This document shows positions 22,401-62,996 of a stretch of 64,000 bases of DNA, in pieces. Under the pieces are notes generated by a model. That model had not been told where the DNA came from. It saw only the letters and a program-made list of their open reading frames with translations, and ran no database searches. The DNA lies in NCBI RefSeq assembly GCF_021869535.1, contig NW_026262581.1:12710001-12774000 (forward strand), in the 5' to 3' direction. The position numbers were made by a program, and so were the translations under genes. Position 1 is the stretch's first letter; each line of letters starts with the position of its first letter. The DNA comes from Mytilus californianus. Lineage: Eukaryota.

Positions 22401-25400
22401 GCAGAAATGAATGGTAGAGTTGTACAAGAAAATTACAGCAAGTTTAGCACATAAATATGTTATGTTCGTTTGAACATCGTGAATTCAGAACATAAATAAA
22501 TTCATATGCGGTATGCGTAGGAATTTCCTTATATATTCTAGTCACTTGTTTAACATGAGAATAAACTTGTTATGCAAATTAGTAGGGTATTTAATAGATT
22601 GAAAACGGATTTAAGTTTGTCGAAGGCTGGGCGGTGACCACTCGACTTGCAGACAATTTTTTTTATATTGTTAAATAAATATAGACATGTGCAGTAAATG
22701 TAAATGAATGTGTATTTTTAGTATACTGATTTGTAATGTTTATTTTATAGATTTGACACGGTGAAGTGTTTTAGCAGCGGTGTTTAGGACATTATTGTTT
22801 GATGAAAATACATTCATAGAGAGTTGATTATGTTGATTATGTTGAATAAATCGAAATAGTCACCGTGCCTGTTAGTATCAGAAATAGTCTTGTCTTATTT
22901 ATATATATATATATATAAAATAGGAGTCAGTCTAGAGCAGAAATGAGGGGTAGAGTTGTACAAGAAAATTACAGGAAGTTAAGCACAAAAATATGTTATG
23001 CTCGTTTGAACATTATGAATTAAGAACATAAGCCTGGTATCTTTGATGAGTTTTTTTTAAATAATGCTCACAAACTTGTTTAACTTTTTATATGCCTGTC
23101 CAAAGCCTTTGACCTGTAATCCAGTGGTTGTTGGCACACTTTAATTGTTTAATTATAGCGTACATTTGGCCGTTGGTTTATTTCTTTTTAGCAGGTGTGC
23201 TTATTACTATAAAACTATACAACTCAATATTGCAATAAGGTCGACCAACACACAATTACGTGTGGCAAAATTCTGGTTAAACCTTAGATAAACTCAATTG
23301 ATCATTTAGTCAACTCTTTGATAGTTAAGATTCCACCTTGAAACTACTCTTCCACATAACCAGCTAGATATATTTTAGATTGGGCAGTTTGTTCTTGCTC
23401 TATCATATATACCCTTACGCCAATGAAGAGTCTTGTGTAGACGAAAAGGGCGTCTGGCGTAACCAATTGTAAATGTGTATTTTTACCAAAAAAACCTTTT
23501 TGCCTTTATCTACAAATGCATTTTGGAAATTAAATTCATCCATCCTTAAAGTAACATTTACGGTACCAATTCTACAGCACCAGATGCGCATTGCGACATT
23601 AAAGTCTCTTCGGTGATGCTCGATGCCAAACTATTTTTAAGATCCAAAAACGTATATAACTATTAAAGAGCTGATACAACCAAAAAAAGACCGAAAGTTA
23701 GTCAAAATCCGGACAAGGAATCAGAGATGTACATGCGAGAAATACATTAATTCATTTTAACTAATTTCCTTAATTTAAAAATTTTAATATATTAATAAAA
23801 TAATGTCCTAAATTTAAAACAGCAAATCAACATAAAATAATTCCTGTATTTTTATTCCAGTACCGAAGTTGTAGCAACTAGTCTGATAATGCCCTCCGGA
23901 ACTAACAGTTCACAGCAGAGATAAATGTCAGTTGAGTATTAACCCTTTATAGACACAACATTTATGGTACTAATTGTACTGCGCCAGATGGGAATCATAT
24001 TAGCAAAATTGGATGTCATAATTTTTCATACCTTTTTTTTAGATGCAAAGATATAAATTGTGTATGACCTATACTAGTATATAATCTGAAAATATTCATC
24101 CACACTCAACCTGATGTATTCCGTTTAATTGATAATTATTGATAACTAACAAAACCGTATCCCTTCTCTTTTGCCCAGTAATATTTTAAACTTGCAGAAA
24201 GTGTATAAATCGATGTGTAAAAATAATAATGTCTTAAAATGTCATATTTCAGGAAAAACTGTCAGAACAAGCAATACAAAAAAAAAACATGCAATATGTG
24301 ATATGGTAAATAAAAAAGGGGTTACTAAAAAGATTATTTTTATGATTGCATGACAAAGTACGTTGTTTGAAGACATTTATGCATCTGGATTTCATTAAAA
24401 CCAGGAGTATCTATCATAAAAAGTCCTTGTCGACTTTGTTTACCAAAACTAAATAACTTTTTAATTTTCATAATAGTTGCATGTTTTTAATTCTGATTTT
24501 TATCCCTCCTATTACAAAGGAACTTGTACTAATTAGAAAATTATGTCGTTAAAATAATATCATAGTATAATATATGCATTACCAATAATGTGAATTGAGT
24601 TGTTGGCGTAAACTTGCAGGGAACAAATTCTGTAATCCTTTTGAAATAAAATCTTTATGAACGGAATCAATGGCTCCGTATTCCATGGCCCGTTTTGCCT
24701 GTATGGAAGAAAAGTAATTGTAATACCATCTAGAAAAGACATTAATATAATTTTCAATGCAGAATATTTGAAAGGAAAACCTAGTTTGCTTTTTACAGTA
24801 CCTATAAATTAATTAGAAAATAAAAAATATAGGATTGCTTAGCATACTGCTATTGATTTAGTCAATCTGTCCCTTTTATAGAATTATTGAAACTATCGTC
24901 AAAGAAGATTTTAAAAATCGCTCTCATTCAATATTATCGAGCTACAGAATTAATACTAGCAATTCTTTCAAAAAAACATTTGCACACAGTAATGATTGTT
25001 GTACATGAGTACTGAAATACTTATGTATAATCATCAAGCTCAATACTAATTATGAAATTATTTCAAAGCATCTCTTAGGAGAAACTGTATGTTCAGTGAA
25101 GGTCAAATATATCAAGTCTGACACGATTATATCGTGACAGTGACATCACAGATGAGAGTGACAAGAGTAAAGCACCCTACTCATTTTAAAATACATATGA
25201 TATCATTTTTAAATTGCATATTTAGAGACAACAAAACAAAAATTGGCTCATTGTTTAATCTTTTTCCTAGTTTTTCCCCTCCCAACTCATTTATAAATAT
25301 AGAGCGTAGAACGAAATGTGTTTCATCAACCAAATGTACCTATATAGGAATGTTTAATATATACCTCTGTAGTTGAAAAGTAGAATATTTGTTCCACTCG

Positions 25401-28400
25401 AAGTCCCTGAAAAATTTGTTCTAGTCGGTACACAATTCCTCGTCTTATTTCTTCTCGGTCCTTAATTGGTACAACATCCCATTTATTACATACAAACAAA
25501 GTTGAAGATGGGCTAAATTCTTCGTCTAAAGTATTTACTACATTTCGCAGAAAATCTTTCAGCTAAAATACACAAAATACATTTTTGTCTAAACACAGTT
25601 CAAGTAAGTGTATATAACATATTTTTTTTCTTTTTTCATTAAGGCATCCACAAGGTTTGATTTTACATTTTTTTTAAATTAACTGTTTACAAAACTTTGA
25701 TTTTTCGAAATACTAAGAATTTTTTCACCCAGGCAAACGTTACCTAAGCTGTATTTAGCAAAACCTTTCGAAATATTAGGAGGTTTAGCTAGCTATAAAG
25801 CCAGGTAACAGCCAGGTTTAATCCACCATTTTCTACATAAGGAAATGTCTGTGCCAAGTCAGGAATATGACAGTTGTTATCCATTCGTTTGATGTGTTTG
25901 AGCTTTTGTTTTTGCCATTTGATAATTGACTTTCCGTTTTGAATTTTCCTTGGAGTTTTGTATTTTTGTTATTTTACTTTTTAGGTCCTCAATTTCATAC
26001 TTTATTTGGCTTTTCAACTTTTTTTAATCGAGCGTCATTGATGAGTCATTTGTAGACGAAACGAAACACGCGTCTGGCGTACACAATTATAAGCCTTGTA
26101 TCTTTGGTGAGTTTTCTTACCCGTCCTTTCTGAACGCCGCCTGCATTAGAAGTATTAACGACATAAATGAAACCACATGACTTTGACAGGTACTTTTGAA
26201 GAGATTTATGCATCTGGATTTCACCAAAACCAGGTGTATCTATTATAACAAGACCTTCCTGAAAGAAAAAATTCTACCCAATTATACACAAATTAATTAC
26301 TTTTTGCCAGAATGATTTCACATTAAATTACAATCAGTAGCGTCCTTCTGGAAAACGTGCCGAACAATGAAAATCTACCGCTGTGTTTGCAAGAGGGATA
26401 ATCTTTTGTGACTATAGTTTCAACTATCATGTCATGTTTTGTTTTTCCTATATAATTCAAGCAGGTTTTTTTGCGTCTTTTATTATATATTATTTACTAC
26501 TTGGAATCTTCACTATATTTTTGGCGATTATTTGTCATTTTCTTTATTCTGTTGTTGTCCTTCTTAACAACACAATACCGATATTTCATGTGTGTGCTGT
26601 CATTCAGATTTAATGTGGATAGTCATGTATGACAATCGTTCGGCATCAGGAAGGATGGATACATTTTTTGAAGGTAGATGGTTACAGTTTAAAAACAAAG
26701 AGATGTGGTATGAATGCCAAAGAGACAACTATCAATAAAGGCAACAGTAGTATACCGCTGTTCAAAAGTCATAATCGATTGAGAGAAAACAAATCCGGGT
26801 TACAAACTAAACCCGAGGGAAACACATCAACTGTAAGAGGAAAACAACGGAACAACAGAAACACTGAAGTGCAACAAAAACAAACACCAACATACATAGA
26901 AACGAGCTATTTTAAAACAACTGCTATATTCCTGACTTGGTACAGGACATTTTAAGAAAAAAAATGGTAAGTTGAACCTGGTTTTATGGCTAGCCAAACC
27001 TCCCGCTTATATGGCAATGTTAAAAAATATCGCTAATATGACAACACTACGTGACAGAAATACAGCACAAACAAACGCAAGAACACTCAGCACAGATAAA
27101 CGCACAAATAAATAATATAATAGCCGGTACAACATGTAAACCGCAGAATAACAACGAACATCTTCTATTAACGACAGAACAGGACATCACAAACAGTGAC
27201 GTATTTTTGTAACGAATATATAATCTTGAAATTCATACAATTACAGACTAAAATAACGAGAATGTTAACTATGGACACTGTACGACAATGATCAAAACCC
27301 ATATCCATTATTAAGGTCCAACATGACAAAATGTGAAGCAATTGTGTCTAGTTCTTTTCAATATTCTTAGGAACATCCATGAGTGAGGATGTAAGGACCG
27401 TCTCCTTTACGTAGCAAATTTTATGTAAGTAAATCATATATAAACAATACCGACTAAAATGGGAAATCTTCGATGCCCTCTTCCACTGTTTTTGAGAAAT
27501 TTGGATCCGCTACTGAATACTTTTGAGAGTCTTTGTCCGGACAATTTTCTAATTTGGCCGCCCTCAGGACACTACTAATTGATATTTATGGACAAAATTA
27601 AAACTACTGCAACATCACTTACCGAGATTTGATGCACTACCATTGATATTTACGGATTAGTTTTATGAAGAAACTATTGGTTTTCAACTTGTTTAAAATT
27701 TCAATGTCTAATCCCTTTCGGGATTCTGAGTCCGTAGCGATTTTCTGATTTGGCCGCCCTCAAAATCCCTTATCAAGCCCTTTTAGGTCTATTCGTAAAA
27801 AACTACCCCACCTCGAACCGTTGTCAGTTTAAAGTGTCCTTCATTCATGCACCTGCGAAGGTTACTCCATAAAGAACTGTACATAACTATACAAACGAGT
27901 TATGTTTATCAAAATAAACATTTCATCTTAATTATAAAAAGACCATTTGTAATTTACTTAAATAAAGTGAATGACCGTGTCAAACATGATCATCTTACAA
28001 CATTTCGTTTTAAATTTTATTAATTTTTATTCCTGAAATAGGGTCACATTCAGTAACGTTTATTGATTATAGGTTGGCTACTTTCTGCTGGCTGTTATAT
28101 ACAATGCAATCACCATTTTTACACGTTTATTATCATTTTGGTTTTCTTTTGGAAATTGACTCATTTAGATGTTGAGAACGTAACCTCATAAAAATATTTC
28201 TAATGTTGTTCGTAGCATACTTTTCTATACAGTTTCTCCATTTACATAAAGCATGTAAAACAAATCATTTCCCACAAACATGAAATCTTATTACCACATC
28301 GTATTATTATTCCAACTGTTCCTCTCTAATAGTATAACATACCTCAATAACATCAGTTGGCCAATATATTTCAATTCTATCGTATGGATTGTCACCATTA

Positions 28401-31400
28401 TTGTCTTCAATAGTAATGTTTTTCTTTAATTTTTCTTGTCCATCCATTGTACTCAAATCTATTTTCACTTCCTTTCCGCCTTTAGCTTCAAAGCAAATTG
28501 CTTTCTTACGACCATCTTTGCTCTTTCGAATTTCGCAAACAGTCTGTGTACATTTAATTCCACTTGTAGGAAGAATGTCTGCTTCAAGCAATAAGTTTAT
28601 AAGACTGCTTTTTCCTGATGTTGCTTCACCTAAAAATGATGTCTCAGAATTAACGGAATTTAGCAAGGAAGCAGGAACCCTTGCCTTTCCTACCGTTAGA
28701 ACGCCACATACGGGTTGGGTTGTTCACTATGTGTGACACGGAGGGCAGCTTCGAAGCGCAGAAAAAAAAATGATCGAAATAAATTATCACATGGTAATGA
28801 GGCATTTACTACAAAAAAGATATTGTTGTCAGTAAGTTTGTCTTTTTCTCTTTTCTACAAAAAAATTGTCAAAGTATGTTTAAGACTAGCTGACAATAGG
28901 TCTCTAGATACTATGACACGAACTAATTCCGTTGTTTCTAATCTCACCAATGATACTACGTAGACCTAAGGTGTACAGTAAAAATAAGAAAGGCCACAAT
29001 TGCAAATGAGGCAATTATCAACTAAGAGAACAAAGTACTACTAGGATGTAAACAACTACGTATACAGGTCAACAACGAAAACAAATCGGTTGTTATAAGC
29101 TAAGCTATTAAGGTAGATAGGGTGTCTTCCTCCATATTGGATTGTGAAATACCAGAAAACAATCGGTCTAGATCTATAATAAAAGGTGCAAATTTTGAGA
29201 GTAGTAGGTAATTCATGTGTAAGAATTTTCATTTCAATATAGAAAATGACATATTTTATCATATTTATGGTTGTATTTTACTAAAAAACAGAATACTTTT
29301 GTTTGATTCTATATTTTCCAACTTTGTCACATAAGGGGAGGCAACTCAAATGTAAGGGCAGATAATTCACATTAAGTTACTTTTACAATAGAATGTGTTA
29401 AGAATTTATCTATTTTATTATGTAGCAAGAAAACGGGTCCGGTGACCCCATTTTTTCTTTTTCTTATCTGAAAGCATACTATTAGAGCTATCTTCTCATA
29501 TTTTATCTCAAAATTCTATGGTGTAGTTTTCATTTTATGGTAGAAAATTGGGTTTTCCATGCATAATCTATACAAAATCTGTCAATTTTGCACAACCTGT
29601 AGCGTAAAAATAAGGCCGGTGACTCATTCTTTTTATTATTTTTTTTTAAAAAGCATGATATAAACTACATTTTGGCAAATTATTAAAAAATTCTATGGAT
29701 TATAATCTACCTTAATAAAAAGAAAAACAATTATTGCAAACGCTAACGACCAACATGCGCTGGACTACATTCTTGGGACAGGCGCATAAAGAATGTGCCT
29801 GGTTTGAGCAGTCTGAGTCCAGAGTTGGAGCAGGTGGTAAATATTGTCACCCAACGCATCGTTCCTGAATTGAAGGACCAAATAGCTAAAGCAATTGAGG
29901 CTATCCAGAGGACACCTACGCCCTGCTCAATCCCATGAAAAGTTGTTGGGAATATAAAACCTACACAAAACTCTCAGAATGAGAAAAGAAAGCCTTGTGA
30001 AACATTTCGGAGTGACTTTCGGAGGGAAAAGAGCTTTAAAAACAATGGATATAGATTTAACTCCAAGTCAGCATCGTCAGTCCCCGGAAGCATATAGGCT
30101 AATGGATTTAGGGAAGACACCAATTAAAGTTGAGAGATTAAGACATAGTTTAAAAAGTTAACCGAATAAAATTGATGCACATATATTGTTAGATGGATTT
30201 ACAAATGGATTTAAAGTAAACTACATGGGTCCGCTTCAATCTTTTAATTGTTCAAACTTGATTTCTGAATTAGAAGAAAAAAAAATTAAAGAGATTCAGG
30301 CTGGGCAAATAGCGGGTCCCTTCAAAAACAAACCTTTTTCTAATCTCCGCTTATCACCGATAGTGCTTGTAGCTAAAAAGCCTCCCCAGGCTCTGAAACT
30401 CACGGCTGGCGTATGATTCAACATTTGAGTTATCTATTTGGAAGTAGTATTAATAGCTTTATTGACCCCCAACTAGCAACTGTGCAATACATATCCTTGG
30501 ATAAAGTTCTTGGTACTATTAGTAAACTAGGAAAGGGGGCAGAACTGGCACGAAAGGATATAGTCCCGGCATTTAGATTATTAATATTGCACCCTGATGA
30601 ATTTGTTTTATTTGGTTTTCGCTTCCAAGACCACTTTTATTTCCAGAAAGCGCTCCCGATGGGTTGTTCGGCGGCGTGCGCCCTGTTCGAAAAATGTGCA
30701 TGCTTTTTGGAGTGGTTGGTCCGGTTCCAATCGTGCAAAGCATAGATAGAGTATTATTTCCTACTTGCTGGAGAAGCTAGGTCTGGGGAATGCTTGCATC
30801 TCATGAACAATTTTAGGCTTATTTGCAGTGGTATTTGAGTTCCCTTAGCGGAGGATAAAACTTTAGGTCCTTAGTGTATTATGACTTTTCTGGGTTTAGA
30901 AATAGATACTTTGGAGATGGTTATTCGAATATCACAAGACAAATTAACAGTAGTTAAGGAAAATTGGAATTGATTATAAAGAAGAGAAAAATCACTCTAA
31001 AAGATCTTCAATCTCTAGAAGGCTCTCTGAATTTTTGTGCCAAAGCAATTCCGTCAGTTCAAGCATTCAACAGGAGGTTTTGTGATGCGATGTGTGGGAT
31101 ACAAAGGTTAAATCATTTTATCAGGGTGACACTAGGTATGAAAAAGGATATAAAAACTTGGCTTACATTTCTCAAGAATTTCAATGGTACTTTGGCTTTT
31201 GATGAGAGTGAACGGCTTTCAACTTGTGAAATACATTTGTTTGCAGACAGCGCTGGTAACCCAGATTTAGGTTTTGGGATTTACTTTTCAGGTCGATGGG
31301 CTTATTTTCAAAGGCCTTCTAGTTGGGAAAACCATGATTTGGCTGACATAACTCTCTTAGAGTTGGTGCCTATTGTGCTCTCAATCTTATGGTTTAAAGA

Positions 31401-37400: not shown

Positions 37401-40400
37401 CTGATCAACAGTGATCCACGCTAATGTGTTAATTTTGATCATATGTGATTCATGATCATGCTTATGTTTCATCTTGATTTATGATAATGTTTGATAAATT
37501 TGTGAGCCGATGCCTTTATTTTGTGAACTAAAATAGTTGTTCATTTTATATCTCTTTGGTATTTATTCAAGCATTAATCTTAAGTTAAAGTTTTGATATC
37601 TGCTTAAGGGTCTAATTATAATTACTTGGGTAATTCCTTTTTTCGTCAACTGATTTTGTTAAGTACATTATGTCTCGTTTGAAGAATGAATTGTATTGAA
37701 GTATGACTATAATATGTCTTAGCATGTGTACATATTGTGCAATGAGGTGTACATTTTTAAATGTTTTATTGACGACCTATTTCATTTCCTTGCAATTAAA
37801 AATGACGTAGCTGAAGTGCATGCAGACTAATGAGTTTTAATCGTTTTAAGGTGGATAGTACAAAGAATGTATGAATACATCTATAACCACTAAAAACTTA
37901 TATATATATATGATATACAACGATGATTCAGTTCTAAGATGTTTTTCTAAAATCATATTAAGATGCGAAAAAATAATATATACCTGCAACAAGAATGTTA
38001 CATTCAGGTGATAACAACTCGGATCGCTTGGAAAGAGAAGTCTTTTCAATGTCTGGAAAGATACTATTCAAATCTTGTTGAAAGTTGACTGGCAGGTCTT
38101 TATAAAAGTTTGAGACTTTGTCATACAGTTTTATCAATTTCTCTGTGTTTCCTCTGTGGTATAGCAATTCTTGATGTAAAACTATTCCTCCCTGAAAAGA
38201 TAATTAAATGAATATGTTTTACGATGAAAATGATGCAAACTTATTAAATATATATTGATATATGTATACTGAAAAAATGCTATAGTTTGACCTGACAAAG
38301 TTGGGTCAACACCTGTGTCCACATTTGGATTGATATCTCAGCGACCATAAGGTGTATGTTTCTTTCAGCACTACGGGGTTGTTTTTTTCAGAGTAGTCTG
38401 ATGTTGTTGATTGTTTCCTGTTATCTTTTTTTTTATTGATTATTCAAAGCATTGTTTTCTACGCAAATTGATAAGAATATTCAGTGGTTGCTGCTATGAC
38501 ATAGCGACTGGAACTGATTAAGAATAATCGTGTTCTTTATGATCAACACCCATTGCTGTCAATTCAATATTGCAACACATATTTGTATATACCCCAAATA
38601 ACCTAAATAAAAATATACAATTTGTATAAAATGCACTTATTTTTTTCTAACAAGATAAACAATAATAATGTTTGAAAGATGCCTATGTAATGTAGGTTGT
38701 ATTATGAGTTTCATAATTTTTTTCAAATATATTCTGTCAGTAATGTGTAGTAATGTAATATCAAGAAATACATATGAAAAAAATCAAAATGGCCAAGGTA
38801 TTTGAAAATTGAAATTTAACGGGGATATTATTTTCTATAGTGAAACGTCTGCAATCGACATTTAAAACCATTGAATGTGGTTTTTTTTTCCATAATTTTT
38901 GTACCCTGCAATTTACCTTATACTCCACTATGGTTATATGATAGTGATTATATCTGAACTTAGCTTGTCTCCCTAATATACTAAAACTAACCCAACTATT
39001 CTATGTTGTACGATTTGGTTTCTGTTACACTAAGTTAAATGAGAGTAAAACTGAGGTATTCCTCAAGGTAATGTATATGTAAGCAACACAAACCAATGAA
39101 TTAAGTTCATCGAAACTTAAACTGCTGTAGCAGGTCATCAGGATTTGAAACGCCTATTCACAAAACTAAATTAATTTAGACTATAACAGATATAAATTAG
39201 GAGTTCTTCCTTTATTGATATTATCTGCAATATACCTTTCCAACTAAGCGCTGAATAGATTCCATTATAACTTATATCTTTTAGTCTTTGGTAAAAAGGG
39301 GAAATGACTAATGCACATTAATATCATGCTATATAATAAAAATAACACTTTATAAATTACATGGGTTTGATTGGCTTTTCTGAATTTACCTTCGTCGTAG
39401 AAATGGTCAAACCTGAGCATTTTAAAGCCAGGGATGCATATATATGTAGTAGAACTATTTGACATATAGATGTCACAACAAAACCAAATTTATACATTTC
39501 CATTTTTAAAAAATTAGCACACTTCAAAACTGGAACCTCCATATCAACTTTGACCAGGTTATCATACATAACTAATGGTAGTTATGGTAGTTTTAACAGA
39601 TTTTTTAATACATATATTGACTACAAAAAGTTTCACTTTTCCCTAATTTGAGAGGTGGAAATGTTGATGAGAATGAATTGTATGTTTATGTGCAAGAATT
39701 TGCATGGAGAAGACATTATTCTAGGTACTGATTTATAGTATCACATTTCCTTTTCAATTTTGGTTAAATTTCCTCCGTCTTTATTATGAGATTGTCTGTT
39801 GAAATGAGTTTGAAATAACTATTGATGTTGCAGTAGAAGGTAATGGTGGGAGATTCGTGCATTTTTGAAAAAAAGTGAGATACATCCTTTAACTCTTGTT
39901 GACGAGGTAAGCAACGTTTTAGAATAAAAAATCGTTATTATTACAGCTTTCATTCATGTATTTCAGTTCTAAAGTTAGCATATAACTAATGTTGTGCTGC
40001 AAATCTGTATGGTGTGCTGTCCACATGCCTATAAGTCAATTTCCGAATTGCAATTATTTGTGTTCTTGCAAAGTCGGTAAGAATTTATACTTTTAACGAG
40101 GAGTTGATGAACAACGTCATGTGGATCAATAATCTGTTTGTTTGTTGCAAATTCAAAAATTAATGATGAACGATAAATGATTAAAATGTTAACTTATCTA
40201 ACGTAAAAATCTTCGAGTTCGGCATTTTAAAAAAAATATATGAGATATCATTAATTATAATTATTTCTAATGCTATGGTCAGTTTATCCATAATCATAAT
40301 AAAAGATTACAAGATTCAATAGTTATTAAAGTCTCGCCACATACATAATATATATATTATATACAGTAAAATACATTTCAGATTAAGAAAAACAGGAATA

Positions 40401-41075
40401 AACAAGTTACAATGTATGTGCCATTCTTAAAAGAATTATGAGAGACTATATTCATGATATTATTAAATATTCATTTACACATTATAAAACACATATTTTC
40501 ATAAAAATTGTAATATTTTTAAATACTATTATTAAGTTATGTATATATTAAATAATTTCTTCCATAAAATCATTATTAAAAAGTGACACTACAGTGAACA
40601 TATTTTGTCTTAAATCGTTATGTAGAGGACATTTTAAAATCACATGATTTTCATCTTTTATTTCGTTAGTACAGTTAAAATTTTGAGAAAGCCGTCAACT
40701 GAAGGTAACCAATCCTTAAGATTAACAGTGTTATTACTGATCACCCCTCACCTAGCGAAATTAACAGATTTGTGATTTATATAGCCGAATCGTTAAAATC
40801 TTAATTTTAATTTGCTTTCCAGTTTCCTATTATCAATGCAAAGACTATATTAATGAATGTACTCAAAATTCTACAATCTAAACAGTTACCTTTTCTTCCT
40901 CGGACGCTGTATGTTCCTTGTCCCACTCATTTAACAAAACTTTAATAATCTCATCCTTTGCTTTTATACCTTTAGTATTTAGTCCCCACGATCTTGCAAA
41001 TCTAAAACCTGTAGAAACATCAGGAATACCGATTATATCGTCTCGACATTGAATATCATACTCTCTAGAAGACAT
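13047..41075 (-). CDS. Gene B: complete 10-exon, 989-aa N-terminal module + dynamin-like GTPase + helical stalk + protein kinase fusion
   Basis: Exons 40890-41075, 37984-38191, 28343-28629, 26121-26258, 25365-25562, 24583-24698, 19503-19951, 18017-18707, 16301-16589, 13047-13454. Total 2970 nt, in frame, all introns GT-AG. GTPase motifs GEATSGKSS, LPTSGIKCT, DTPG, NKWD. Kinase motifs GSGSFADVY, VALK, HRDMKLEN, DVG, GSPVYMAPE. Confidence 0.93.
13689..13995 (+). repeat. Dispersed DNA-transposon-like fragment with a TTAA|GG end; inverted copy at 29420-29715
   Basis: The two copies align over ~300 bp (cacgctacaggttgtgcaaaattg..., ggggtcaccg). The TTAA-GG terminus is Kolobok-like, but only one end is seen. 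Confidence 0.55.
16301..16589 (-). CDS. Gene B exon 9 (kinase to catalytic loop)
   Basis: tttag|(R)ETKHPNIIQYYGC...HRDMKLENIL|gtgagc; 289 nt. Confidence 0.94.
18017..18707 (-). CDS. Gene B exon 8 (stalk + kinase N-lobe start)
   Basis: taaag|(G)TLLGEHDKK...LLGSGSFADVYKG...VALKYC...LLEDRTL(R)|gtattc; 691 nt. Confidence 0.94.
19503..19951 (-). CDS. Gene B exon 7 (helical stalk)
   Basis: tttag|WLSQIVKRANYTLK...QIEAIE G|gtacaa; 449 nt. Confidence 0.93.
20682..20860. mobile_element. MITE nested in the gag ORF of the PAT/DIRS-like element
   Basis: TA duplication at 20680-81 and 20861-62; removing it restores ...DEKK-I-RAADNRAVKK in frame. Confidence 0.9.
22040..22250. repeat. Abundant dispersed repeat (aactataggtcaccgtacggccttcaacaat family); related copies near 470-720, 1500-1590, 23090-23200, 44385-44640, 48800-49035
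   Basis: Shared motifs gatgtggtatgattgccaatgagacaact and ccgtacggccttcaacaat, seen in both orientations. Confidence 0.75.
23416..23461 (+). ncRNA. Degenerate minimal type I hammerhead ribozyme motif (best-paired of at least 8 remnants)
   Basis: tacgcca-atgaaga-gtct(tgtgt)agac-gaaa-agggcg-tc-tggcgta. Stems I and II pair and GAAA is intact, but the CUGAUGA core and stem III are mutated. Confidence 0.6.
24351..24430 (-). pseudogene. Decayed duplicate of gene B exon 4 (DTPG exon) inside intron 6
   Basis: Reads QGLFMIDTPGFNEIQMHKCLQ; 55/63 nt identical to B exon 4 (26121-26258); acceptor lost and frame breaks afterwards. Confidence 0.8.
24583..24698 (-). CDS. Gene B exon 6
   Basis: The ORF track shows the wrong frame. 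tacag|AKRAMEYGAIDSVHKDFISKGLQNLFPASLRQQLNSHY(C)|gtaatg; 116 nt; supplies the phase 0 to 2 link. Confidence 0.92.
25365..25562 (-). CDS. Gene B exon 5 (G4)
   Basis: Not in ORF track. tttag|LKDFLRNVVN...TLFVCNKWDVVP...YFSTTE|gtatat; 198 nt. Confidence 0.93.
26121..26258 (-). CDS. Gene B exon 4 (G3)
   Basis: Not in ORF track. ttcag|EGLVIIDTPGFGEIQMHKSLQKYLSKSCGFIYVVNTSNAGGVQKGR|gtaaga. Confidence 0.93.
28343..28629 (-). CDS. Gene B exon 3 (P-loop, G2)
   Basis: tttag|(G)EATSGKSSLINLLL...YWPTDVIE|gtatgt; 287 nt. Confidence 0.95.
33690..33880. repeat. ~32-bp tandem repeat inside the Ngaro B repeat (second array 37300-37470)
   Basis: Unit gatccatgctaatgttataattgattaatcgt, about 5-6 diverging copies, no spacers. 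Confidence 0.85.
33908..35781 (+). mobile_element. 5'-truncated Penelope-like retroelement nested in Ngaro repeat B1
   Basis: RT motifs YTSIPH, GIPMGTNCAP, FRYIDD. The empty site aaatttgtgagccg is preserved in B2 (~37496-37509); a 2-5 bp target duplication (gt to tttgt) is possible. Confidence 0.92.
36398..37029. mobile_element. Non-autonomous DNA transposon (~630 bp) with ~24-bp TIRs and TA flanks
   Basis: TA|acgtgagggtacccaaattgcacc ... ggtgcaatttgggtactgtgacgt|TA (3 mismatches). Confidence 0.85.
37984..38191 (-). CDS. Gene B exon 2
   Basis: ttcag|GGIVLHQELLYHRGN...PECNILVA G|gtatat; 208 nt. Confidence 0.92.
40890..41075 (-). CDS. Gene B exon 1 (62-aa N-terminal module)
   Basis: MSSREYDIQCRDDIIGIPDV...SEEEK|gtaact, phase 0. 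Confidence 0.87.
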
Positions 41076-41850
41076 TTTGATATGACCGTCACTTTACTTC
41101 ATCCACAAATCTTCCATCTTGTTGGATTTTTGTCATGATTTTTTGGTAACTATTAATGTACAGATTCAACAAAAGAATCCTTGTGATAATAGCATATTAC
41201 ATTTATTTTCCTTCCTTGTCTATGCTTCAGTATAGTTCAGAGCGACAATAGTCCTATCGTTCCTTACAGATTTGGACGATTTTAAATTGCTGTGATATAG
41301 ATATGTCATTAAGATAATAACCATTTGTTAAACAAATAAATAACCAAACAATAAGACCTCTAAATCTTTTAATTTAAATAATTAATTGTTTTGTAGGTAT
41401 AGTCAACTAAAATATTCAATAAAAGAGGATCTTTGAGGGCTCAACGTGAGCAAGTTTGTTTCTTAAAGCATAAAAATTAACCACAAAATTAGTTGGTTTG
41501 TGTAAACTAAAAATTACTGAAATCTCTAAAAACAAAAATGCGCATACATTCGGCATGTCTGTTTTCCTGTGACATATTTCTAACACTGAAGATGGGATAC
41601 ATGTATATAGATTCATAAGTTCAAGGCATTTACATTTTTTCAAGAAGAAGCCAATTGGAAAAAGTAGGTTGCCTTTTTCGGTTCACAATCTGTAAGTATC
41701 CTTATGAAATAATTTAAATCATCGTATTATATAAATCTATTAACTCAGAGAGAATCCTGGTGACAAACATATTCACCCATCCTAAACTGAATTCTTCAAA
41801 TTTCTGAACATTCTATATGCGATGAACATTTTAATTGTTAGTTTCCTACG

Positions 41851-50118: not shown

Positions 50119-50523
50119 CTAATGTCGCAAAAATTTTTCAAAAAATATTTTTATATCTGTAGCTTCGGGTCTCTGAGTTTGATCTTTTGCCCAGCAAGCT
50201 TTTATCAAATTTTGCCAGTTTTCGTCTGGTTTATATTTCAGTGATAATGATGGTCGCAGTCCTTCGTCCACTACCGCCTTTTCCAGGGAGGTATACAGTT
50301 GTTGTTGTATATGGTCTGCTGCGTCGATGCCATACCACATCTCCCACAGCATTATTCCGAGTGCATAAATATCGGCTCTTCTGTCATAAATTCCTTTCGG
50401 AACAAGTACTTCCGGTGCCATATACACAGGTGAACCTAGAATTGATCCACCAATATGATCTTCCCTCTTTGTTAACCCTACATCTGTAAGTTTGACTACG
50501 TCATGTCCATCTTTTCTCACCGT
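50119..50523 (-). CDS. Gene C exon 10 (kinase C-lobe, stop)
   Basis: ttgcag|TVRKDGHDVVKLTDVGLTK...GSPVYMAPE...FLRH TAG. Confidence 0.94.
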   Translation of the reverse strand, partial: TVRKDGHDVVKLTDVGLTKREDHIGGSILGSPVYMAPEVLVPKGIYDRRADIYALGIMLWEMWYGIDAADHIQQQLYTSLEKAVVDEGLRPSLSLKYKPDENWQNLIKACWAKDQTQRPEATDIKIFFEKFLRH

Positions 50524-53500
50524 CTGCAAGGAAAAAAAGTAAAGTAAAGTCAGTAAATGCATATTTGATTGTATTGACAATTTGATACAAAGTATACATT
50601 AATAACTTTTATATACGATAATCCCGGGCTTGTATTTTCTATCATGATTTTCTTGATAACAGGTTGCTTCTCACAAGGAAGCTATTAAACCATGAGTTCC
50701 AAGTGGTGAAATTGAAATCGTCCCTTCGTAACTTTTACGGACGCCATCACGAGTTGGTTGACCGTTATGGAATATCCGTTTCACAGATGACCACGGATAT
50801 GTTCCAATTGTCGTAACTACAATCCTTTTCCCTTTTCCTCGAATGTGACCTATCGAATTAGACTTATCACCGGGTTTGTACTTACATGAGCAACACGACG
50901 GGTGTCACACGTGGAGCAGGATCTGCTTACCTTTCTGGAGCACCTGAGATCACCCCCAGTATTTGGTGTGGTTCGTATTGCTCAGTCATTAGTTTTCTAT
51001 GTTTTGTTTTGTGTAGTGTTGTTTGTTTGTCTTTTTCTTTTTATCCATGGCGTTGTCAGTTTATTTTCGACTTGTGAGTTTGAATGTCCCTTTGGTATCC
51101 TTCGCCTCTCTTTTAGAATATCTATGTTCCATATTTTGAAAAATGTGTAATACTAATTTTCCACTATTTACTTCACTTAACATTATTTACTAGCCGGAAA
51201 ATTCACAACAGGTGATAGTGTTACATTTTGGTAAATCTTGATACTATTTGGCGATTGTTGTATCAGTCACAACATTGCCACCACTTATAGGAAAATAAGA
51301 AGACCCCACGGAAAAAGGCGAATAAACAAATCCCTTGAGTCAAAGAATTGAGAGCCACCATTACAATGACGAAACAACTAACATGAGACCACAAAACATT
51401 GCACAGAAAAATAAATATTGTCCAGCATGACCTCAACTAAAACTGGGGATAAAATCAGATACTCTGAATGATTATTGGTTCTTGCTTCACTAGCGCATAT
51501 AATCGAAAAAATAAATTACATCATTTGAGTAGCTTTTTTGAGAGAAATCATCCCCCCTCAAACTCATTCAAAGAAATTCTGATTGGAAACACATACTTTG
51601 GAAAATTGTTGCAATATTTTATAAAGATATATTTTTAAAGCGCGGTTAGAATTATGCTGTAAAAATGAATAAGTTAACAAGTTAAATTTGATAAATACAA
51701 TCAAAAGTCAAAAGTGTTTTATTTATTCAGTGAAAAGAATATCATCTATATAGGGGGACGTAAAAGTGTGCTAACATTTTTCAATTCTTACTGTAAAAAA
51801 AACTCAAGATTGCCTTATGCAATTAAACTACCTAGTCAACTGAAAGAAGGAAAACCTTGAATTTGCAAAATTACTTCCTTTGTAACTGAATATTTACTAT
51901 CAAAACTTTCAGTGAAATCATATAATTACCCAAGAACAGATTTCTTAGTAGACAGTTTAACTCCATATACAGACAATCAATAAAAATATGAATGTAGTAG
52001 TAGTTATAAGCATCAACTTCTAATAAACACTGTACATATGTTTTAATGATATTATTAAGCATTACGAACGCACACATAAAAAAGATCGATAATGAACTGT
52101 GCTTCGTTTAGATTGCTCTTATATTAAAATTGTCAGTATTTTATAGATTTTAATAAATTTACCAAAATGTTTTCTAATTTCATATCACGATGAACCATTT
52201 TCTTCTTGTGGAGAAACTCCAATCCTCCACATATCTGGACAGCATATCTTGCAAGCTCTTCCATTTGCTCTATCTGTACAGAGTATATTTCAACTTTACC
52301 AGGGTTTTCGTACTCTGAGCTAATGAATTTATTTTTCAGGGTGTCATCGCAGTATTCCATTATCATAATCCAGTGAACCATTCTCCTGGTTTTACCACTC
52401 TGTTGCAATGTGCATCCATGATATTGTATAATATTTGGATGCTGCAGTTCCCTGAAATAAAAATGTGTACATCTGTAACATTTTGTTCTTTTGTCAATCG
52501 CCGTTTCCCGCCTTTTCCGATTAAATGTATCATTCGGCATATCGTTCTCTAACACAATGTTGCTGAAATATTGGCCACGGGACTTTAAAACCCAATAAGC
52601 AATCAATCAAATTGAAACAAACAACAAAGTGGATAATATTTCAATTATTGTAGCGACGCTTCAGTTATCAAAAAGATTATTTTACTCGTCAGAAGCGCGA
52701 TACTTCCTCTAATATACTTTAAAATTCCACTATATATGACTGAAATTGACAGCAAAAACATATTTACATTACAACAACACTGAACTGTATAGATGTGACA
52801 AATCAAACCAATATTATTTTGATATCGGCTAAGAAAAAAATACCTCAATGTTCTATCTTCTAATAAAATGTCCGATATAACCTTTTCCGACAATGGATCT
52901 TTGCAATACTTCAGTGCAACTTTTTCATTCTGGTTAGGTAGTTTAAGTTGACCTTTGAAAACGTCTGCAAAACTTCCACTTCCTAAAAGATCATCTCTGT
53001 CCCATTCAACGTCACTTAATCTGTAATCCATGTCCATGATGTAATATACATAAAACAAATCCAGTTCTCCTTGAATTGTGTGACCTGAGGAAATAAATTG
53101 TGGATACATCTTCCTCATCTTGTCGTCTGTATCTCTTACACTGTGTGTAATTTTTTCAAGAAGCTGACTATCTGCTTTGAGAAATTCTGGTATTTTCTTG
53201 GCAATTTCATCCACACCTTTTACCAATTTGCCCAGATAGTTTGAAATTTTGTCTTGTAATTCATTTCCCTGAAAAATTGACTCAATAAACATGACTGTTG
53301 CCTCTGCCATTTTCTTTGTATTATTATCTTTCTTGTAAGCTTTGAATATTTCTCTAAATTTTTTGTTACTGGCTATAACTGAACCAACAGCTCCTACCGC
53401 TCCTCCTAAGCCTCTTACGTCATCATCAACACCATCTCGCTTTGCTTTTCTCCATAGGGCTTTTACTGGTGCTTGCTTCTTCATTGATTTGTGGAGGTCG

Positions 53501-56500
53501 TTTATTATCTTTTTATCCTGTTCTCCGAGAAGAGTACCTTTTAATGAACGAAAATATGTTCTTGAATTCGTGATATATTCAATGAATAGAAAAAAAATTT
53601 TAATCAATTTAAATCATCTGTTGTATCAAATTGTAAAATGTTCTTTTTGCTAAATTTGAAATCTAAAAATTAAAATTAAAAAAAAATCTAAAATTTATGC
53701 AAATACGGTGAAAATAAATTCGTCTTTGCGTGTTTTCTAACATGCTTGTATGGTTATATGATAATTAAGAGTACATGTCAAATAAAACCATAAACACATA
53801 TTCTGCAGTTAATGGGAACCCAAACATAATGGAGACACAAATCGGAGATCTATGATCTTTTATAGAAGTGAAGATCCCAATTTGCATATTTTTAACATCA
53901 TTTGCTGTGGGTTTTTATTTAATCATACTGTTATCATCGTAAAATATAAAAACCAGACCTGTCCTTTTCACAAAAAGGAAAAATGTATTATCTGCCATTT
54001 TATAAAATGTCCGCTTACAGAAATTTTCAAATTAGTTAATTTTCAAAAATACAAATAATGATTATGAAAGAATTTACCTTCTATTGTTATGATTTGGTCC
54101 TCTAGTAGTTCACAATCTCGTTTAAATTTCTTTATCATCTTCTCTTTTAGTGAGTGGATAATTCGTTGTTCCTTTTCCCATCTATTTAACTCTACTGCAA
54201 CTTTACTTGCAATTCTTTCGGCTGCTTCCTTTGCCAACTTCTTAGAATCATCAGGAGGTGGACATTCAACCTGGTTCCAGTCAGTCAATGTGCTGAGCAT
54301 GTTCCGTGACCTTAACACGTCAGCTGTTGTTTTGTGCAAATCTGTTATCTCATACTGTAGTCCTTTTCTCAGATCATCAATTGTATGTCTTGATTTCGCC
54401 TCTAAGGCGTCCATATTACGTTTGATTCCGTCCATCTTTTTGGTCATTTCTTCTTTGTCTACAGCGTCTAATGTTTTAGATACTTTCAGTGAGTAATTAG
54501 CTCTTTTTAGAATCTGTGACAACCACCTATTATTGAAAATAAAATTTCATAATAATCACTATCAGTCTCGAGAAAGTTACGATAGAACAACTGGGTCGTA
54601 AGGATGGAGATCAGCACGTCCTCATTAATTGTATATGTGTTAGTTCATGGACACAGTCTTAAGTAACGAACTTAGTTGTAGAAGGGGATTTATATTTCGA
54701 TCCTTTCTAAAATATAATCAAAACTTCTAGCTCGTTGACAACGTTAAGGTTTCTTGCAGTAATATAGTTACACGAATATATATCACAGTCTCACGAACTA
54801 CGGGTGTATTTTCAATAGTTGGACTATAGCTTTTATCAAACTAATTGCAATTATCAAGTATATTGACGGTTGTAATGTTCAAACATGGTTGCCTCAATTC
54901 ATTGATTTTACTGAATTACTTATCTTACACCTAAAAAACGACTATCATCTATTGCTGCTTAAGTTGGTAATGAAAACGCCATCCTAGATATGCGCCCGTT
55001 TTGCAGTGAAGTCTCGGATTTCAATTTTAACACTAGTAATTAAAAGAAAAAAGATTTACTGTGGAAGAATTCGGATTAATAGACTTATTTTTTCATAGGA
55101 ATTGCTCTTCCGAGATCATTCTCAGTTTTTGATTGGGTTCGTGATGCTCAGTCTATAGTTTTCTATGTTGTGTTTCGTAGACTGTTGCTTGTATTTTCGT
55201 CGTTTTTGTTGTTTTGTTTGCAATGGCGTTGTCAGTTTGTATGTGACTTAGAATATCCCTTTTGTATATTCCGCCTTTCTTATATTGATAAAAGTTATAA
55301 TTGTACTGTTGTTCAATCACTGTTACAGTGTTCATATTCATTTCATAGTGACTAACATGTTCTCGTCCTGAAATGTATGTTAGATTTTTCACTGGATGTT
55401 AAACATCAGTCAAATCAACCATCACAGATCAGGAACCTCTTCAGTAGTTGTAGTACGTCATATCTTAATGTTCTTCGTTATCTGGAGAGTTGGTGTTGAT
55501 GGCTGATCATTATTGATTGTCTCTTTTAATTTTAATCAACTTTTAAAGACTCGGGACGAAATTGTTTTGACACCTGTCTATTGTTCAAGAATGTATGGTA
55601 ATTTTTCCTTTGGCCTTCGAGTGAGTTAACTTCTGCTAATTTTAGAGGAGTGCATAAACTGAATGAAATTTTAGTTATTTCACTTTCCAATCCAAGTTTT
55701 ACATTTGACATGTGTCATAGCCCATCAATGTTACAAATCATATATAGCCGTGCCTTACTAATTTACATTTTTAATTCACTCAAAGCTACGCTTTTCGTTA
55801 ATTAAATAAGTTTATTCGTAAAACGCGTGCTATATATATATATATATATCTTGTATAGATATCGTTTGATTATTTTTGTTATTGGGTTGCTTTTTTATTA
55901 ACGAGTAACCAACATCTCCTTTTATTCAATTGAAGATGTGAATATGTAGGATATACATGAATGAGACACATTACATGTCTCCTTAATTAGTTTGTGTATA
56001 GTTATTTTGTTTCTCCACTTTCTCATTTTGGCATGCTTTGTTATTGAATAATTTGTTTATACTTATAATTACCGATAATGCGAATTGAGCTGTTGACGTA
56101 AACTAGCTGGAAACAATCGCTGCAGTCCATTGGATATAAAATCTTCATGACCAGAATTTATGGTTCCGAATTCTATTGCACGTTTGGCCTAAATATAAGA
56201 AACACCATATTGATAACACCGACCAAAAACGAGTAAAGGACTACATTTTCTACAAGTACATATACACTGTAGAAACTGAATTTGAATTTTGAGCATCTGT
56301 AAACATTTTGTAGTATACCTTCTTTTTTTCCAACAATCCGCAATCAGGAAGTCGTTATCCAGAAGATTTAAGATTGAATGCATTGTAGAACTTAATATGA
56401 TCGAGCTTCTGATCAAAATAGCCATACGGAAGTTCTGAAAATCAGACATACGGTGCGAGTAAACATTATCTATTTCAAGCCAAAATGTGTAATCTCTTCT

Positions 56501-59500
56501 TTTGATACAAGTTAAAACAAACTTCGTCAAAAAGTTTTATGTTCGACTGAAATAGTAAAACTTCTATCATTGGCAAGCTGTAATAGCAGTAACGATACCA
56601 ATTGTACTGCACCAGGTGCGCATTTCGACAAAACAATGTCAAATCAGTGATGCTTGAGGCTGAAATACTTGAAAACCCAAATTTATAGCGTGTACATGTC
56701 AGAACTGCATGGATTTCATCTATCAATTTCTAAACCAAATATTAAATCAGCCCATTTAAAAAAGGAAAGAAAAATATACCAAAAATGTCTAATTTAGTGG
56801 GTACAGTTAAAATAAAACCCTTTGCCAACAAATACGTGACATCACGACAAAACATAAATTCGCATACACGAACTATAGCTAAACATCATTAAGCTCAAAA
56901 CAACTGATATGACTGGTGTAACTATTCTTTTTAAATTAAACCCAAGAAAACCTTTGCAAAAACTTTATGTTCATTGGATAGTTATATATCACGTTAGTAT
57001 CAGCATCAAATAGATGCATTGTTTATCTGAAAATCGATTAATTGGTTCAACTGAGAATTGAGTTGAACTTGAGGCGAAAGGACGAATGGACAGACTAATG
57101 CAGTATACCGCCACTCTAAAAGTGAATCTGTAATTAAAATTGTCGGAGAAAATCTTCATATTAAATACAAAAATCCTTAATAAGTTTTATAATTAAAGTT
57201 TACTATAAAAATTTTATGTTGACCTCAAATTTCTTGTATTGATATTAATTCTCTGAGATATTACCTCTGTGGTTGAAAAGTAATATATTTGCTCTTGTCG
57301 AAGTCCCTGAAATATTTGTTCCAATCGGTACACAATTCCCCGCTTTATTTCTTCCCTGTCCTTAGGTGGTACGACATCCCATTTATTGCAAATGAATAAA
57401 GTGGACGACGGACTGAAATCTTCTTCTGAAGAGTTGACTATATTTCTTAGAAAATCTTTCAACTAAAATATACAAAGTATTGATAATTACAAATTATGTC
57501 AGCACTACGGCAGATACAACAGGATATGTGTTGCGGGTTGCCATTCAAAACAATTGATTTTGCAATGCATCAGATTTTTTCTACCGTTCCTTTTGACATT
57601 TCAATACGATGGATTTTGCAAAATGTACGAAAGATTTTGATATGTTTAACCCATTGCATCTGCAGTACCGATAGTCGATAACAGGGTGAAAAGTATAATC
57701 GACAAATTTTCAGTTTTACAAAACTGTATAGCTGCTTCACATATCTTCAACGTTTCCTAGGGAAATGCTTTGCTTCCTTTAAGATTACACCATTTCTATA
57801 ACTGGTGTCTAAGTTTGTAGGCTGTTTTTTTCTAATTTACCAGTAAGATATCATAAATTTGTCATGAATATTGTAACATCAAATGAGACTTATATTTAAA
57901 AATAACTTCCTTCTTAATTTATTAAGAGTTTGTCAGCATACATCAAGTCTCATTGTACTATTTTGTCAAACTGGCACTTGTACTATAGTCTTAGGCTAGA
58001 ACTGTACTAAACTCTGATTTATTAATTTGATCAAGTTAACACAATTTATTCTTGAATACAATTGTCATTCTTTTTATTATTCTGATAATATACTGTTATA
58101 AACATATCTTTTGATACGGTTTTGTACTTTTCCTACTTATGTGGGTTTTTTTAAAACTATTACAGTTACTTTAGAGTAGATGGCTTTTCTTGTTCTGATC
58201 TTTAATCTATAGGTATACACTTTTAATGTACATGTTTTATTCCACTGATCGAAATTAATAAAGGGAAACATAAAGGTATAAGAAACAAGAAAAAATAAAA
58301 CTAACCCCCGCAATATGTCAATTTACATGACTATTGTCCTAAGTAAAAAACTCTTAGTTTTTATCTGAAGTTTTTGTCATTTGGGAAACTTGGTTTTGAT
58401 GACAGATTTTTGAAAGTTTCTCGTATATATTCACAAATTCTTTTAGACTCGATGCGTTTAGTGCTCGATATCTTGTGAAGACAGCTGTCTTTTGTTGAAG
58501 ACCTTATGCTTACATGTAGATATCTTATTTTTTCTTTCTTTTGTGTATTTTTTTCATTAGCGCACACCCAATATCTCCTTTTATTCATTGAAGAAACCAT
58601 GTGAATGTATAAAACCTGATAGGTACATTACAAATAAGTTTTATGGTTCAAAAATTTTAAATTTCATGCGTCCAAAGAGAGGTGAAATTCAATCAGAAAC
58701 ACTTCTAGGACATTAATGAGTTATCAACCATTTCTTACCCGTCCTCTCTGAACACCGCCTGCATTAGCAGTATTCACAACATAAATAAATCCACACGATT
58801 TTGAGAGGTACTTTTTAAGTGATTTGTGTATCTGGTTGTCACCGAATCCAGGAGTATCTATTATCACCAGACCTTCCTGGAAAAAACCCAGTAAATTGGA
58901 AATTTTGTATCATTACTTATTACAATATACTTGTACATTCAACATATTATACAGTAAAAAAAAATTGTAAACGGCATTATGAAATATTTCATCTGATCAT
59001 CCATGACCTTTACAATAAACCCACATGTTCTCTTTTTCCTAAAACGGCAACGCTTTTAAACATTGCCATTTAAATTTAAATAATAAAATCCAATTGCGTA
59101 ACAAGACTTAAATTGCTAATAAGAAAACAAATTACATAGCCGCATAAAGGCCGGTTCAATGCAAACATTTTAATATCATGTAGTCATAAATCACATCTAG
59201 TAATAAAATCATCGTAAAAGTGGGTTAATATACTCATATCTTTTGCAATCACAAGTCAATAAGAGAGTTTCTTTTTAGTAGAAAAGTCAGCTGCAACTTC
59301 AGGTTTACGCATCTTACAACTGTGGACAAGATATCCAGTAAAACCTATTTGTTAAATTGAAATTAGAAACCAAATCAATTGGCAGAAAATTTGAAGACAT
59401 TATTTTTTTAAAGAGATACCTCTGAAATAAAGAAAATATACCTCGACTTGATCCTTGATACACTCAGCAAAAGTTAAAATTCGGCACAGTTGCCGTTTGA

Positions 59501-62500: not shown

Positions 62501-62996
62501 ACATAGTGTGGATACATAATTTATCATTTTAAACCTATCACTATATAAATAGTCTTCTCGTTCCCATCAGTATAAATATACCGACAGAAGCAAGCATGAT
62601 TCAAATATATTCTTATTTTTAAACACACCAAAAACAGACCGAATTATCGAAAAGTTTGCTAGAATTTAGGTTTCTATCTTAGGTGCATCACTGTCATATT
62701 CTTTTTATTGCATTTTCAAACCAATAAAAACAAACAATTTAACACACGCATTCATAAGACTAATGAATTTGTATACATAAAGGTCGAAATCAGTTAAAAT
62801 AAAATCTTACCGTTTTTCTATCTTTGGGTGCAACAGCTCCATTTTCTTTATAAAATTTGACTAGTTCTGATACGAAAATATCTTTATTTGCAGTTTTTGG
62901 TGCTTTTATTCCCCACTGTTTAAAAAGTTTCATCATGGACGATATATCTTTCAGTTGTAAAATGTCTTCTACATTGTTGATTTGTATTTCTGCCAT
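50119..62996 (-). CDS. Gene C: complete 10-exon, 989-aa N-terminal module + dynamin-like GTPase + helical stalk + protein kinase fusion
   Basis: Exons 62811-62996, 60656-60863, 59668-59954, 58739-58876, 57265-57462, 56073-56188, 54078-54526, 52844-53537, 52163-52451, 50119-50523. Total 2970 nt, in frame, all introns GT-AG; same motifs as B. Confidence 0.93.
50614..51114 (+). mobile_element. Penelope-like 3' fragment in gene C intron 9 (shorter related pieces near 49480-49830 and 55095-55280)
   Basis: Aligns with 7530-8035 and 35300-35781, ending ttcgcctctctttt. Confidence 0.88.
52163..52451 (-). CDS. Gene C exon 9 (kinase)
   Basis: ttcag|(R)ELQHPNIIQYHGC...HRDMKLENIL|gtaaat; 289 nt. Confidence 0.94.
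52844..53537 (-). CDS. Gene C exon 8 (stalk + kinase N-lobe start)
   Basis: aaaag|(G)TLLGEQDKK...LLGSGSFADVFKG...VALKYC...LLEDRTL(R)|gtattt; 694 nt. Confidence 0.94.
54078..54526 (-). CDS. Gene C exon 7 (helical stalk)
   Basis: aatag|WLSQILKRANYSLK...QIITIE G|gtaaat; 449 nt. Confidence 0.93.
56073..56188 (-). CDS. Gene C exon 6
   Basis: Not in ORF track. tttag|AKRAIEFGTINSGHEDFISNGLQRLFPASLRQQLNSHY(R)|gtaatt; 116 nt. Confidence 0.92.
57265..57462 (-). CDS. Gene C exon 5 (G4)
   Basis: tttag|LKDFLRNIVN...TLFICNKWDVVP...YFSTTE|gtaata. Confidence 0.93.
58739..58876 (-). CDS. Gene C exon 4 (G3)
   Basis: Not in ORF track. tccag|EGLVIIDTPGFGDNQIHKSLKKYLSKSCGFIYVVNTANAGGVQRGR|gtaaga. Confidence 0.93.
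59668..59954 (-). CDS. Gene C exon 3 (P-loop, G2)
   Basis: tctag|(G)EATSGKSSLINLLL...YWPTDIIE|gtatgt; 287 nt. Confidence 0.95.
60656..60863 (-). CDS. Gene C exon 2
   Basis: ttcag|GGTVLQEALQYHRGN...PECNILVA G|gtatat; 55/69 identical to B. Confidence 0.92.
61472..61790. repeat. ~45-bp minisatellite with internally palindromic unit, gene C intron 1
   Basis: About 7 diverged copies of ccactgaccagtatacatgtacaaggtcagtagaactaaagac (ctgacc...ggtcag dyad). Confidence 0.8.
62811..62996 (-). CDS. Gene C exon 1 (62-aa N-terminal module, divergent type)
   Basis: CAAGATGG start, MAEIQINNVEDILQLKDISSMMKLFKQWGIK...KDRKT|gtaaga, phase 0; same 186-nt size as exon 1 of A and B. Confidence 0.82.

Follow-up and report, generated by a model that had tools for sequence, protein, structure and literature searches.

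Gene B of a Mytilus californianus GTPase-kinase row is a mosaic of its two neighbours and probably arose by tandem duplication

Gene row and gene structure

The window analysed here is a stretch of 64,000 nucleotides (nt) of the Mytilus californianus genome (contig NW_026262581.1, positions 12,710,001 to 12,774,000), and window positions are used unless stated otherwise. It is AT-rich animal DNA with about 32% GC and without N. The window holds a minus-strand tandem row of multi-exon genes for a Dynamin_N GTPase joined to a protein kinase (Pfam PF00350 Dynamin_N, 5e-11, and PF00069 Pkinase, 1e-16), in the transcription order C, B, A. The middle gene, B (LOC127704566), is a mosaic. It is of the A type in the 5' flank, in exon 1, and where intron 1 begins, and of the C type from the end of intron 1 onwards. 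The genomic context was inspected for 70 kb downstream and 40 kb upstream of the window, and past the low end the row continues after A with gene F and then gene G.

The ten exons of B give the protein XP_052064671.1 (P0203) exactly, with GT/AG splice sites, and the ten exons of C (50119..62996, minus strand like all features below) give XP_052064581.1 (P0218) in the same manner. The protein of A is P0133. Exons 8 and 10 each differ by 3 nt between B and C, and otherwise the two genes agree in all exon lengths and phases. Exon 1 has 186 nt, or 62 codons, in each of A, B, and C, and its phase is 0 in all three, as the initial annotation of this DNA had stated for intron 1. Exon 1 of B lies at 40890..41075 and matches the head of XP_052064671.1 exactly, and exon 2 comprises 208 nt (37984-38191). 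Mapping of the same protein places exons 3-6 at 28629-28343, 26258-26121, 25562-25365, and 24698-24583, and exons 7-10 at 19951-19503, 18707-18017, 16589-16301, and 13454-13047. The C-type body in exons 3-10 (13047..28629) comprises the Dynamin_N GTPase, a helical middle part, and the protein kinase. In C, the donor type of this body, exon 1 is at 62996-62811, exon 2 at 60863-60656, and exon 10 at 50523-50119.

The exons of B are open, and their translations carry intact P-loop, DTPG, NKWD, and HRD motifs. Among molluscan and cnidarian Dynamin_N GTPase and kinase proteins, B shows the complete domain architecture with all motifs and falls within the cluster of the family, whose members carry source names such as 'dual serine/threonine and tyrosine protein kinase-like', 'RIPK5', and 'tyrosine-protein kinase Fer-like'. 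It differs from the rest of the family in having a head, the 62-residue N-terminal part encoded by exon 1, from a different subfamily than its body.

Retroelement open reading frames (reverse-transcriptase-like and integrase-like) occur at 30413-32590 and 34076-35422 in intron 2 of B, and at 7061-7735, 42194-44349, and 50613-51139. Several copies of one element, 80-88% identical, are found in the introns of B, in both spacers, and just downstream of the last exon of C. B spans 28 kb and C only 13 kb because retroelement reading frames sit in the introns of B.

The mosaic in coding sequence

The initial annotation described B as a chimera with an A-type head and promoter and a C-type body, and exon-by-exon comparison agrees with it. 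In exon 1, A (3290-3475, the donor-type head) and B share 44 of 62 amino acids (71%) and 82.3% of nucleotides, with a synonymous divergence (dS) of 0.52 (bootstrap confidence interval 0.27-0.92), whereas B and C share 18% of amino acids and are saturated at silent sites. The relation is reversed in exon 2, with 27.5% amino acid identity between A and B and 79.4% between B and C. The B-C identity is 81% in exon 3 and 71-88% in the later exons, while A and B share 26-52% in the later exons. These values reproduce the earlier hand counts of 44/62 for exon 1 with little B-C identity, of the reversal in exon 2, and of about 80% for exon 3.

Across the whole body (exons 2-10) the dS of B and C is 0.68 (confidence interval 0.57-0.81), and the A-B body is saturated, with a proportion of synonymous differences (pS) of 0.76. 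Exon 1 of A and exon 1 of C have 41% nucleotide identity, and their pS is saturated. The mosaic reflects history and not protein constraint, because the silent sites show the same pattern as the amino acids. A blastn comparison of B with A finds exon 1 as the sole genic match (41076-40886 versus 3476-3286, 82.7%, 191 nt), and a comparison of B with C finds matches of 80-88% at all exons save exon 1. All remaining blastn matches among the DNA of these genes are mobile-element copies.

Non-coding homology and the switch point

The patches of similarity earlier seen in the 5' flanks of A and B are real, collinear, and at matching distances from the start codon (ATG). The flank and promoter region of B (41076..41575) is homologous to the donor-type flank of A (3476-3975), and possibly weakly so to about 1.5 kb. 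When the 500 bp before each ATG are aligned globally, the score is 18, whereas controls average -36 (standard deviation 11) and none of 1000 random windows from this region reaches 18. The blocks 1-250 and 251-500 bp upstream are each equalled in 0/600 controls, and the block 1001-1500 bp upstream is marginal (5/600). This homology is visible in collinear tests only, global or banded, and local Smith-Waterman alignment of the two flanks is not significant alone (47/400 controls). In the 1.65-Gb genome, 40690-41575 matches only itself and exon 1 of A, and so the objection that the shared flank might be an independently inserted repeat fails.

The similarity continues into intron 1. The first 200 bp of this intron give z 3.3 between A and B (1/600 controls), and the 5' part of the intron in B (40681..40889) is still A-like. 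The flank and the intron 1 start of C are without signal against B or A in the same control tests. At the other end of the intron, similarity between B and C reaches about 25 bp upstream of exon 2 by blastn and weakly about 100 bp (z 1.8). These last 25 bp or so and exon 2 (37984..38216) are of the C type, with 87.7% identity to C 60646-60885. The first 250 bp past the stop codons of B and C are also similar (z 3.2, 0/500 controls). Between intron 1 of A and that of C, the last 200 bp give a marginal signal (7/600 controls), and no other homology is detectable now.

The switch lies in intron 1, as first proposed, since B is A-like until about 40680 and C-like from about 38217. The interval between these points (38217..40680, about 2.4 kb) is without homology to intron 1 of A or C. 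It carries interspersed repeats at about 40297-40680, 39326-39457, and 38240-38351, whose copies elsewhere in the genome are 90-98% identical. Because such young repeats lie in the interval, the intron has been remodelled since the event, and the search for the breakpoint bounds it to 38217-40680 and gives no finer position. The young repeat at 40297-40680 is inserted exactly where the A-like part of the intron stops.

An A-type exon 1 on a C-type body would also result if gene conversion from A had overwritten the 5' end of a complete C duplicate. Such a conversion is very unlikely here, as it needs a tract of at least 0.9 kb with flanking homology, and exon 1 and the flanks of A and C were already unalignable. 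It is not an ongoing process either, since orthologous heads are closer to each other than paralogous ones.

Expression and selection

B is a real, expressed, working gene that is spliced as predicted. Transcript contigs from three public runs join 40890 to 38191, skipping 2698 bases with GT..AG ends. One of the three runs is a declared RNA-Seq library, and it carries a different allele or comes from a sister species. The contigs of B start about 110-120 nt upstream of the ATG, near 41185-41197, and raw RNA reads pass from exon 2 of B into exon 3. The order of the parts could be an error of assembly or annotation, but the chance of this is negligible, given the spliced joint in independent runs and the presence of the same chimera in five independently assembled species.

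The ratio of nonsynonymous to synonymous divergence (dN/dS) is 0.17 for the body of B and 0.26 for its head, and by these ratios B is kept under purifying selection. Pairwise dN is 0.112 between B and C, 0.130 between C and the C-like outgroup protein P0140, and 0.185 between B and P0140, so that the branch of B is about three times that of C. The body tree repeats this asymmetry of branch lengths. The heads of B vary across species, with 80% identity between M. californianus and M. galloprovincialis. The net charge of the head is +4 in A, -3 in B, +3 in C, and -10 in the head-to-head partner gene of C, and the head of B has therefore drifted in charge from that of A.

Orthologues, donor, and recipient

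The family was recovered by a library search with the largest exon of C, followed by full-length relatives and the cluster listing. Orthologues of B were traced by body search and the same listing, and a word search with the head of A returned A orthologues only. The chimeric B is annotated in M. californianus, M. coruscus, M. galloprovincialis, M. edulis, and M. trossulus. In M. coruscus and M. galloprovincialis the entries of C and B follow one another in accession or LOC number. M. trossulus has two copies of B. These B-type chimeras, P0208 and P0212, have consecutive accessions, and in one of them the head has diverged strongly and a run of glycines lies where head and body meet.

In A itself, and in the A orthologues of M. 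trossulus and M. galloprovincialis, an A-type head is joined to an A-type body. The heads of C are nearly invariant, and of the C type, in five Mytilus species. P0140, which comes from Logan RNA assemblies, also has a C-type head and is saturated at silent sites relative to C. In the body tree it branches outside C and B (Shimodaira-Hasegawa-like approximate likelihood ratio test, SH-aLRT, 96 and 99), and the support of the B clade is 100. The nearest relatives of the C/B body are proteins of Saccostrea and Pinctada. In the head tree, A and B form a clade (100/99) and the B heads are monophyletic (99/99), while the C heads fall together with P0140, Saccostrea_141, and Pinctada_138, in agreement with the grouping of the bodies. 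The A-type heads sit with the G or F heads, and the A body sits with F and relatives. Head and body trees thus stay incongruent with more paralogues and orthologues added, and the relatives of C outside the B/C split carry C-type and not A/B-type heads. The initial annotation had named congruent trees, or A/B-type heads in those relatives, as observations that would speak against its reading.

The C-type head of P0140 and the two trees point to a B/C ancestor with a C-type head. On this phylogenetic evidence the head of A is native to A, the A lineage is the donor of the head of B, and B is the recipient. The event predates the Mytilus radiation and postdates the split from the species of P0140. 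The transfer could have run in reverse, with the head of B ancestral and that of C replaced or evolving fast, or with A receiving its head from B. The head of C is indeed the most divergent in the local array. Such a reversal is exceedingly improbable, since a C-type head is already present in P0140, which diverged before B and C separated, and the C-group orthologues of Pinctada and Saccostrea group with the C heads. The A-type heads join the G or F heads just as the A body joins F and its relatives, and the near invariance of the C heads in five Mytilus species does not fit a fast-evolving head. A relic of a C-type exon 1 was found neither near B nor elsewhere in the genome, in which exon 1 of C is unique.

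Gene F has two tandem head exons, E and F, 3 kb apart before one body, at contig positions 12697444-12697632 and 12694351-12694536 (window -12557..-12369 and -15650..-15465; loci L012, L004, and L005). The annotated M. galloprovincialis protein P0168 carries the E head, the outgroup RNA protein P0160 has an F-type head, and E groups with F in the head tree (96/96). This looks like a first-exon duplication, present either as alternative first exons or as a relic. The outgroup Logan RNA contig L018 (7422 nt) holds a C-like gene head to head with an opposite-strand gene for a Dynamin_N and kinase protein of 1069 amino acids, which suggests that the divergent arrangement of C and its partner is also present in the outgroup.

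Age and proposed origin

The head and body parts of B are of equal age. At 4-fold degenerate sites, exon 1 of A and B differs at 6/15 and the body of B and C at 102/253, a difference of 0.40 in both. Random sets of 62 body codons have a pS as low as that of exon 1 in 21% of draws, and the confidence intervals of the head and body dS overlap (0.27-0.92 and 0.57-0.81). The similar divergence of the A-B head and the B-C body, on which the initial annotation relied for a single event, is thus confirmed.

B probably arose by a single tandem duplication with its breakpoints in two first introns. In an ancestral C-A pair, the segment that begins in intron 1 of C and ends in intron 1 of A would have been duplicated in tandem, which is equivalent to an unequal exchange. 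The duplication would leave C and A intact and create B at the junction. The promoter region of B, its exon 1 with the 62-residue head, and the start of its intron 1 would then descend from the A lineage, and everything from the remainder of intron 1 through exons 2-10 to the first part of the 3' flank from the C lineage. The reading frame would have been kept because intron 1 is in phase 0 in both parents. B lies between both parents, in the same orientation and in the order C-B-A, which is the layout expected of a junction gene. The equal age, this order, the lack of a relic head, and the shared phase-0 intron together fit one tandem duplication. From them we infer both the single event and the kind of molecular exchange.

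The initial annotation had gone further and proposed an unequal crossover of the anti-Lepore type. The C-B-A layout of the product agrees with this proposal. Misalignment by homology in the Lepore sense seems unlikely given the sequence divergence, A and C having already been saturated at silent sites. The same product would come from a tandem duplication that was non-homologous or mediated by repeats, and this is at least as likely.

Several observations weigh against a single duplication or its simplest form. The C-B spacer (9.0 kb) and the B-A spacer (9.6 kb), expected to be copies of each other after one duplication, have no homology beyond the gene-proximal few hundred bp. The best non-genic spacer block, 47401-47636 versus 11150-11371 with 69% identity, is an interspersed repeat. 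The retroelement blocks 44349-42194 and 8064-6413 are about 80% identical, but their flanks are non-homologous, and this identity exceeds the approximately 56-60% expected of neutral DNA of the age of the duplication. The evidence on the outgroup locus comes from RNA contigs of one species, and the ancestral two-gene C-A locus is postulated. The approximately unbiased (AU) test against a joint clade of B and C heads is marginal (p 0.024 and 0.062). Finally, exon 2 of B and C (37984-38191 versus 60656-60863) has a pS of 0.20, compared with 0.47 in the other exons (P about 0.0006), so the history of the B body is not perfectly uniform.

Some of these points have explanations of their own. The AU test is marginal because the head alignment has 64 columns, and the base-level evidence for the mosaic is independent of it. 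The low divergence of exon 2 is not due to constraint on silent sites, because exon 2 is saturated when C is compared with the outgroup, and B and C may later have exchanged a short tract by gene conversion beside the junction. Loss of the spacer signal is expected because neutral divergence is about 0.7, and the single event is then not directly shown by the spacers. Collinearity of the spacers was considered as proof of one duplication and rejected, as the matches consist of the interspersed repeat and younger retroelement copies. The 236-bp element at 47401-47636 has 2481 first-look candidates in the genome, and it also forms long tandem arrays on contigs C88 (about 10.22-10.24 Mb) and C154 (about 70.01-70.04 Mb).

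The missing spacer homology, which would prove one event, also leaves room for two steps, in which C or its body was duplicated and, independently though at a similar time, a copy of the A 5' end, with flank, exon 1, and the first part of intron 1, supplied exon 1 of B. The cluster does offer a precedent for the copying of a first exon together with its flank, in the tandem head exons E and F of gene F. Such a history is nevertheless unlikely. It needs two rearrangements in the same intron with the same silent-site age, no relic of a C-type exon 1 was found near B or elsewhere in the genome, and a single junction product would give precisely this gene order. The single tandem duplication remains the preferred origin of B.

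The head module

The head is conserved across bivalves and gastropods in the Dynamin_N GTPase-kinase family. Comparison of the head with Pfam and by PDB sequence profile gave no match. AlphaFold models based on alignments of 34-36 sequences predict a short helix, a helix, an extended loop, and a longer helix, with a predicted local distance difference test score (pLDDT) of about 70-80. The model comprises a helix at residues 20-30, a loop, and a helix at residues 40-60, as a unit set apart from the long helix of exon 2. Foldseek gives weak matches only, all with E above 1, which are enriched in SAP and SAP-like domains and include Hcc-1, Tho1, the C-domain of MANF/CDNF, and 3'-exonuclease and FAN1 entries. 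With low confidence, these models suggest that the head could be a small SAP-like docking unit.

A wider and rather doubtful idea is that the head serves as a docking or address module, which sets the partner or site of each GTPase-kinase, and that the family diversifies through phase-0 first-exon cassettes. If so, B would be a C-type enzyme redirected to the partners of A and to the expression domain of A. It would also be freed from the conserved pairing of C with its head-to-head, acidic-headed neighbour, and gene F, with its two head exons, would provide another example of heads being moved.

Relation to known chimeras and significance

The layout of parent 1, hybrid, and parent 2 in a tandem pair is shared by B and the anti-Lepore haemoglobins. 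The latter arise by homologous misalignment of closely similar genes, with a crossover within the aligned sequence. The parents of B differ from these in being saturated at silent sites, and misalignment driven by homology is unlikely for them unless a shared repeat mediated it.

Chimeras made by tandem duplication join the 5' end and regulatory region of one gene to the 3' end of its neighbour, and such a chimera sits between intact parents, in frame and transcribed (PMC5460883; see also PMC4069613). B is similar to the Drosophila chimeras of this kind, as it has the 5' end and regulatory region of one neighbour and the 3' end of the other, and its parents are intact. In contrast, most Drosophila chimeras are young, segregating, and mostly lost, while B is old (dS about 0.5-0.7), fixed, and present in at least five species. 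The parents of B also belong to one gene family, and a homologous module was exchanged, whereas the Drosophila cases fuse unrelated parts. No paper was found on a chimera in this GTPase-kinase family or at this locus.

B is a clean, if ordinary, example of gene birth at the junction of a tandem duplication. For genome evolution it is an added example and brings no new principle. It is a well-dated, fixed, and expressed bivalve chimera that has been kept through the whole history of Mytilus, with both parents adjoining. For the family, A, B, and C form a natural domain-swap experiment on the small N-terminal head of an unstudied group of GTPase-kinases. A comparison of the expression, partners, and localisation of the three could reveal the role of the head, and whether the promoter and the head travel as a functional unit.

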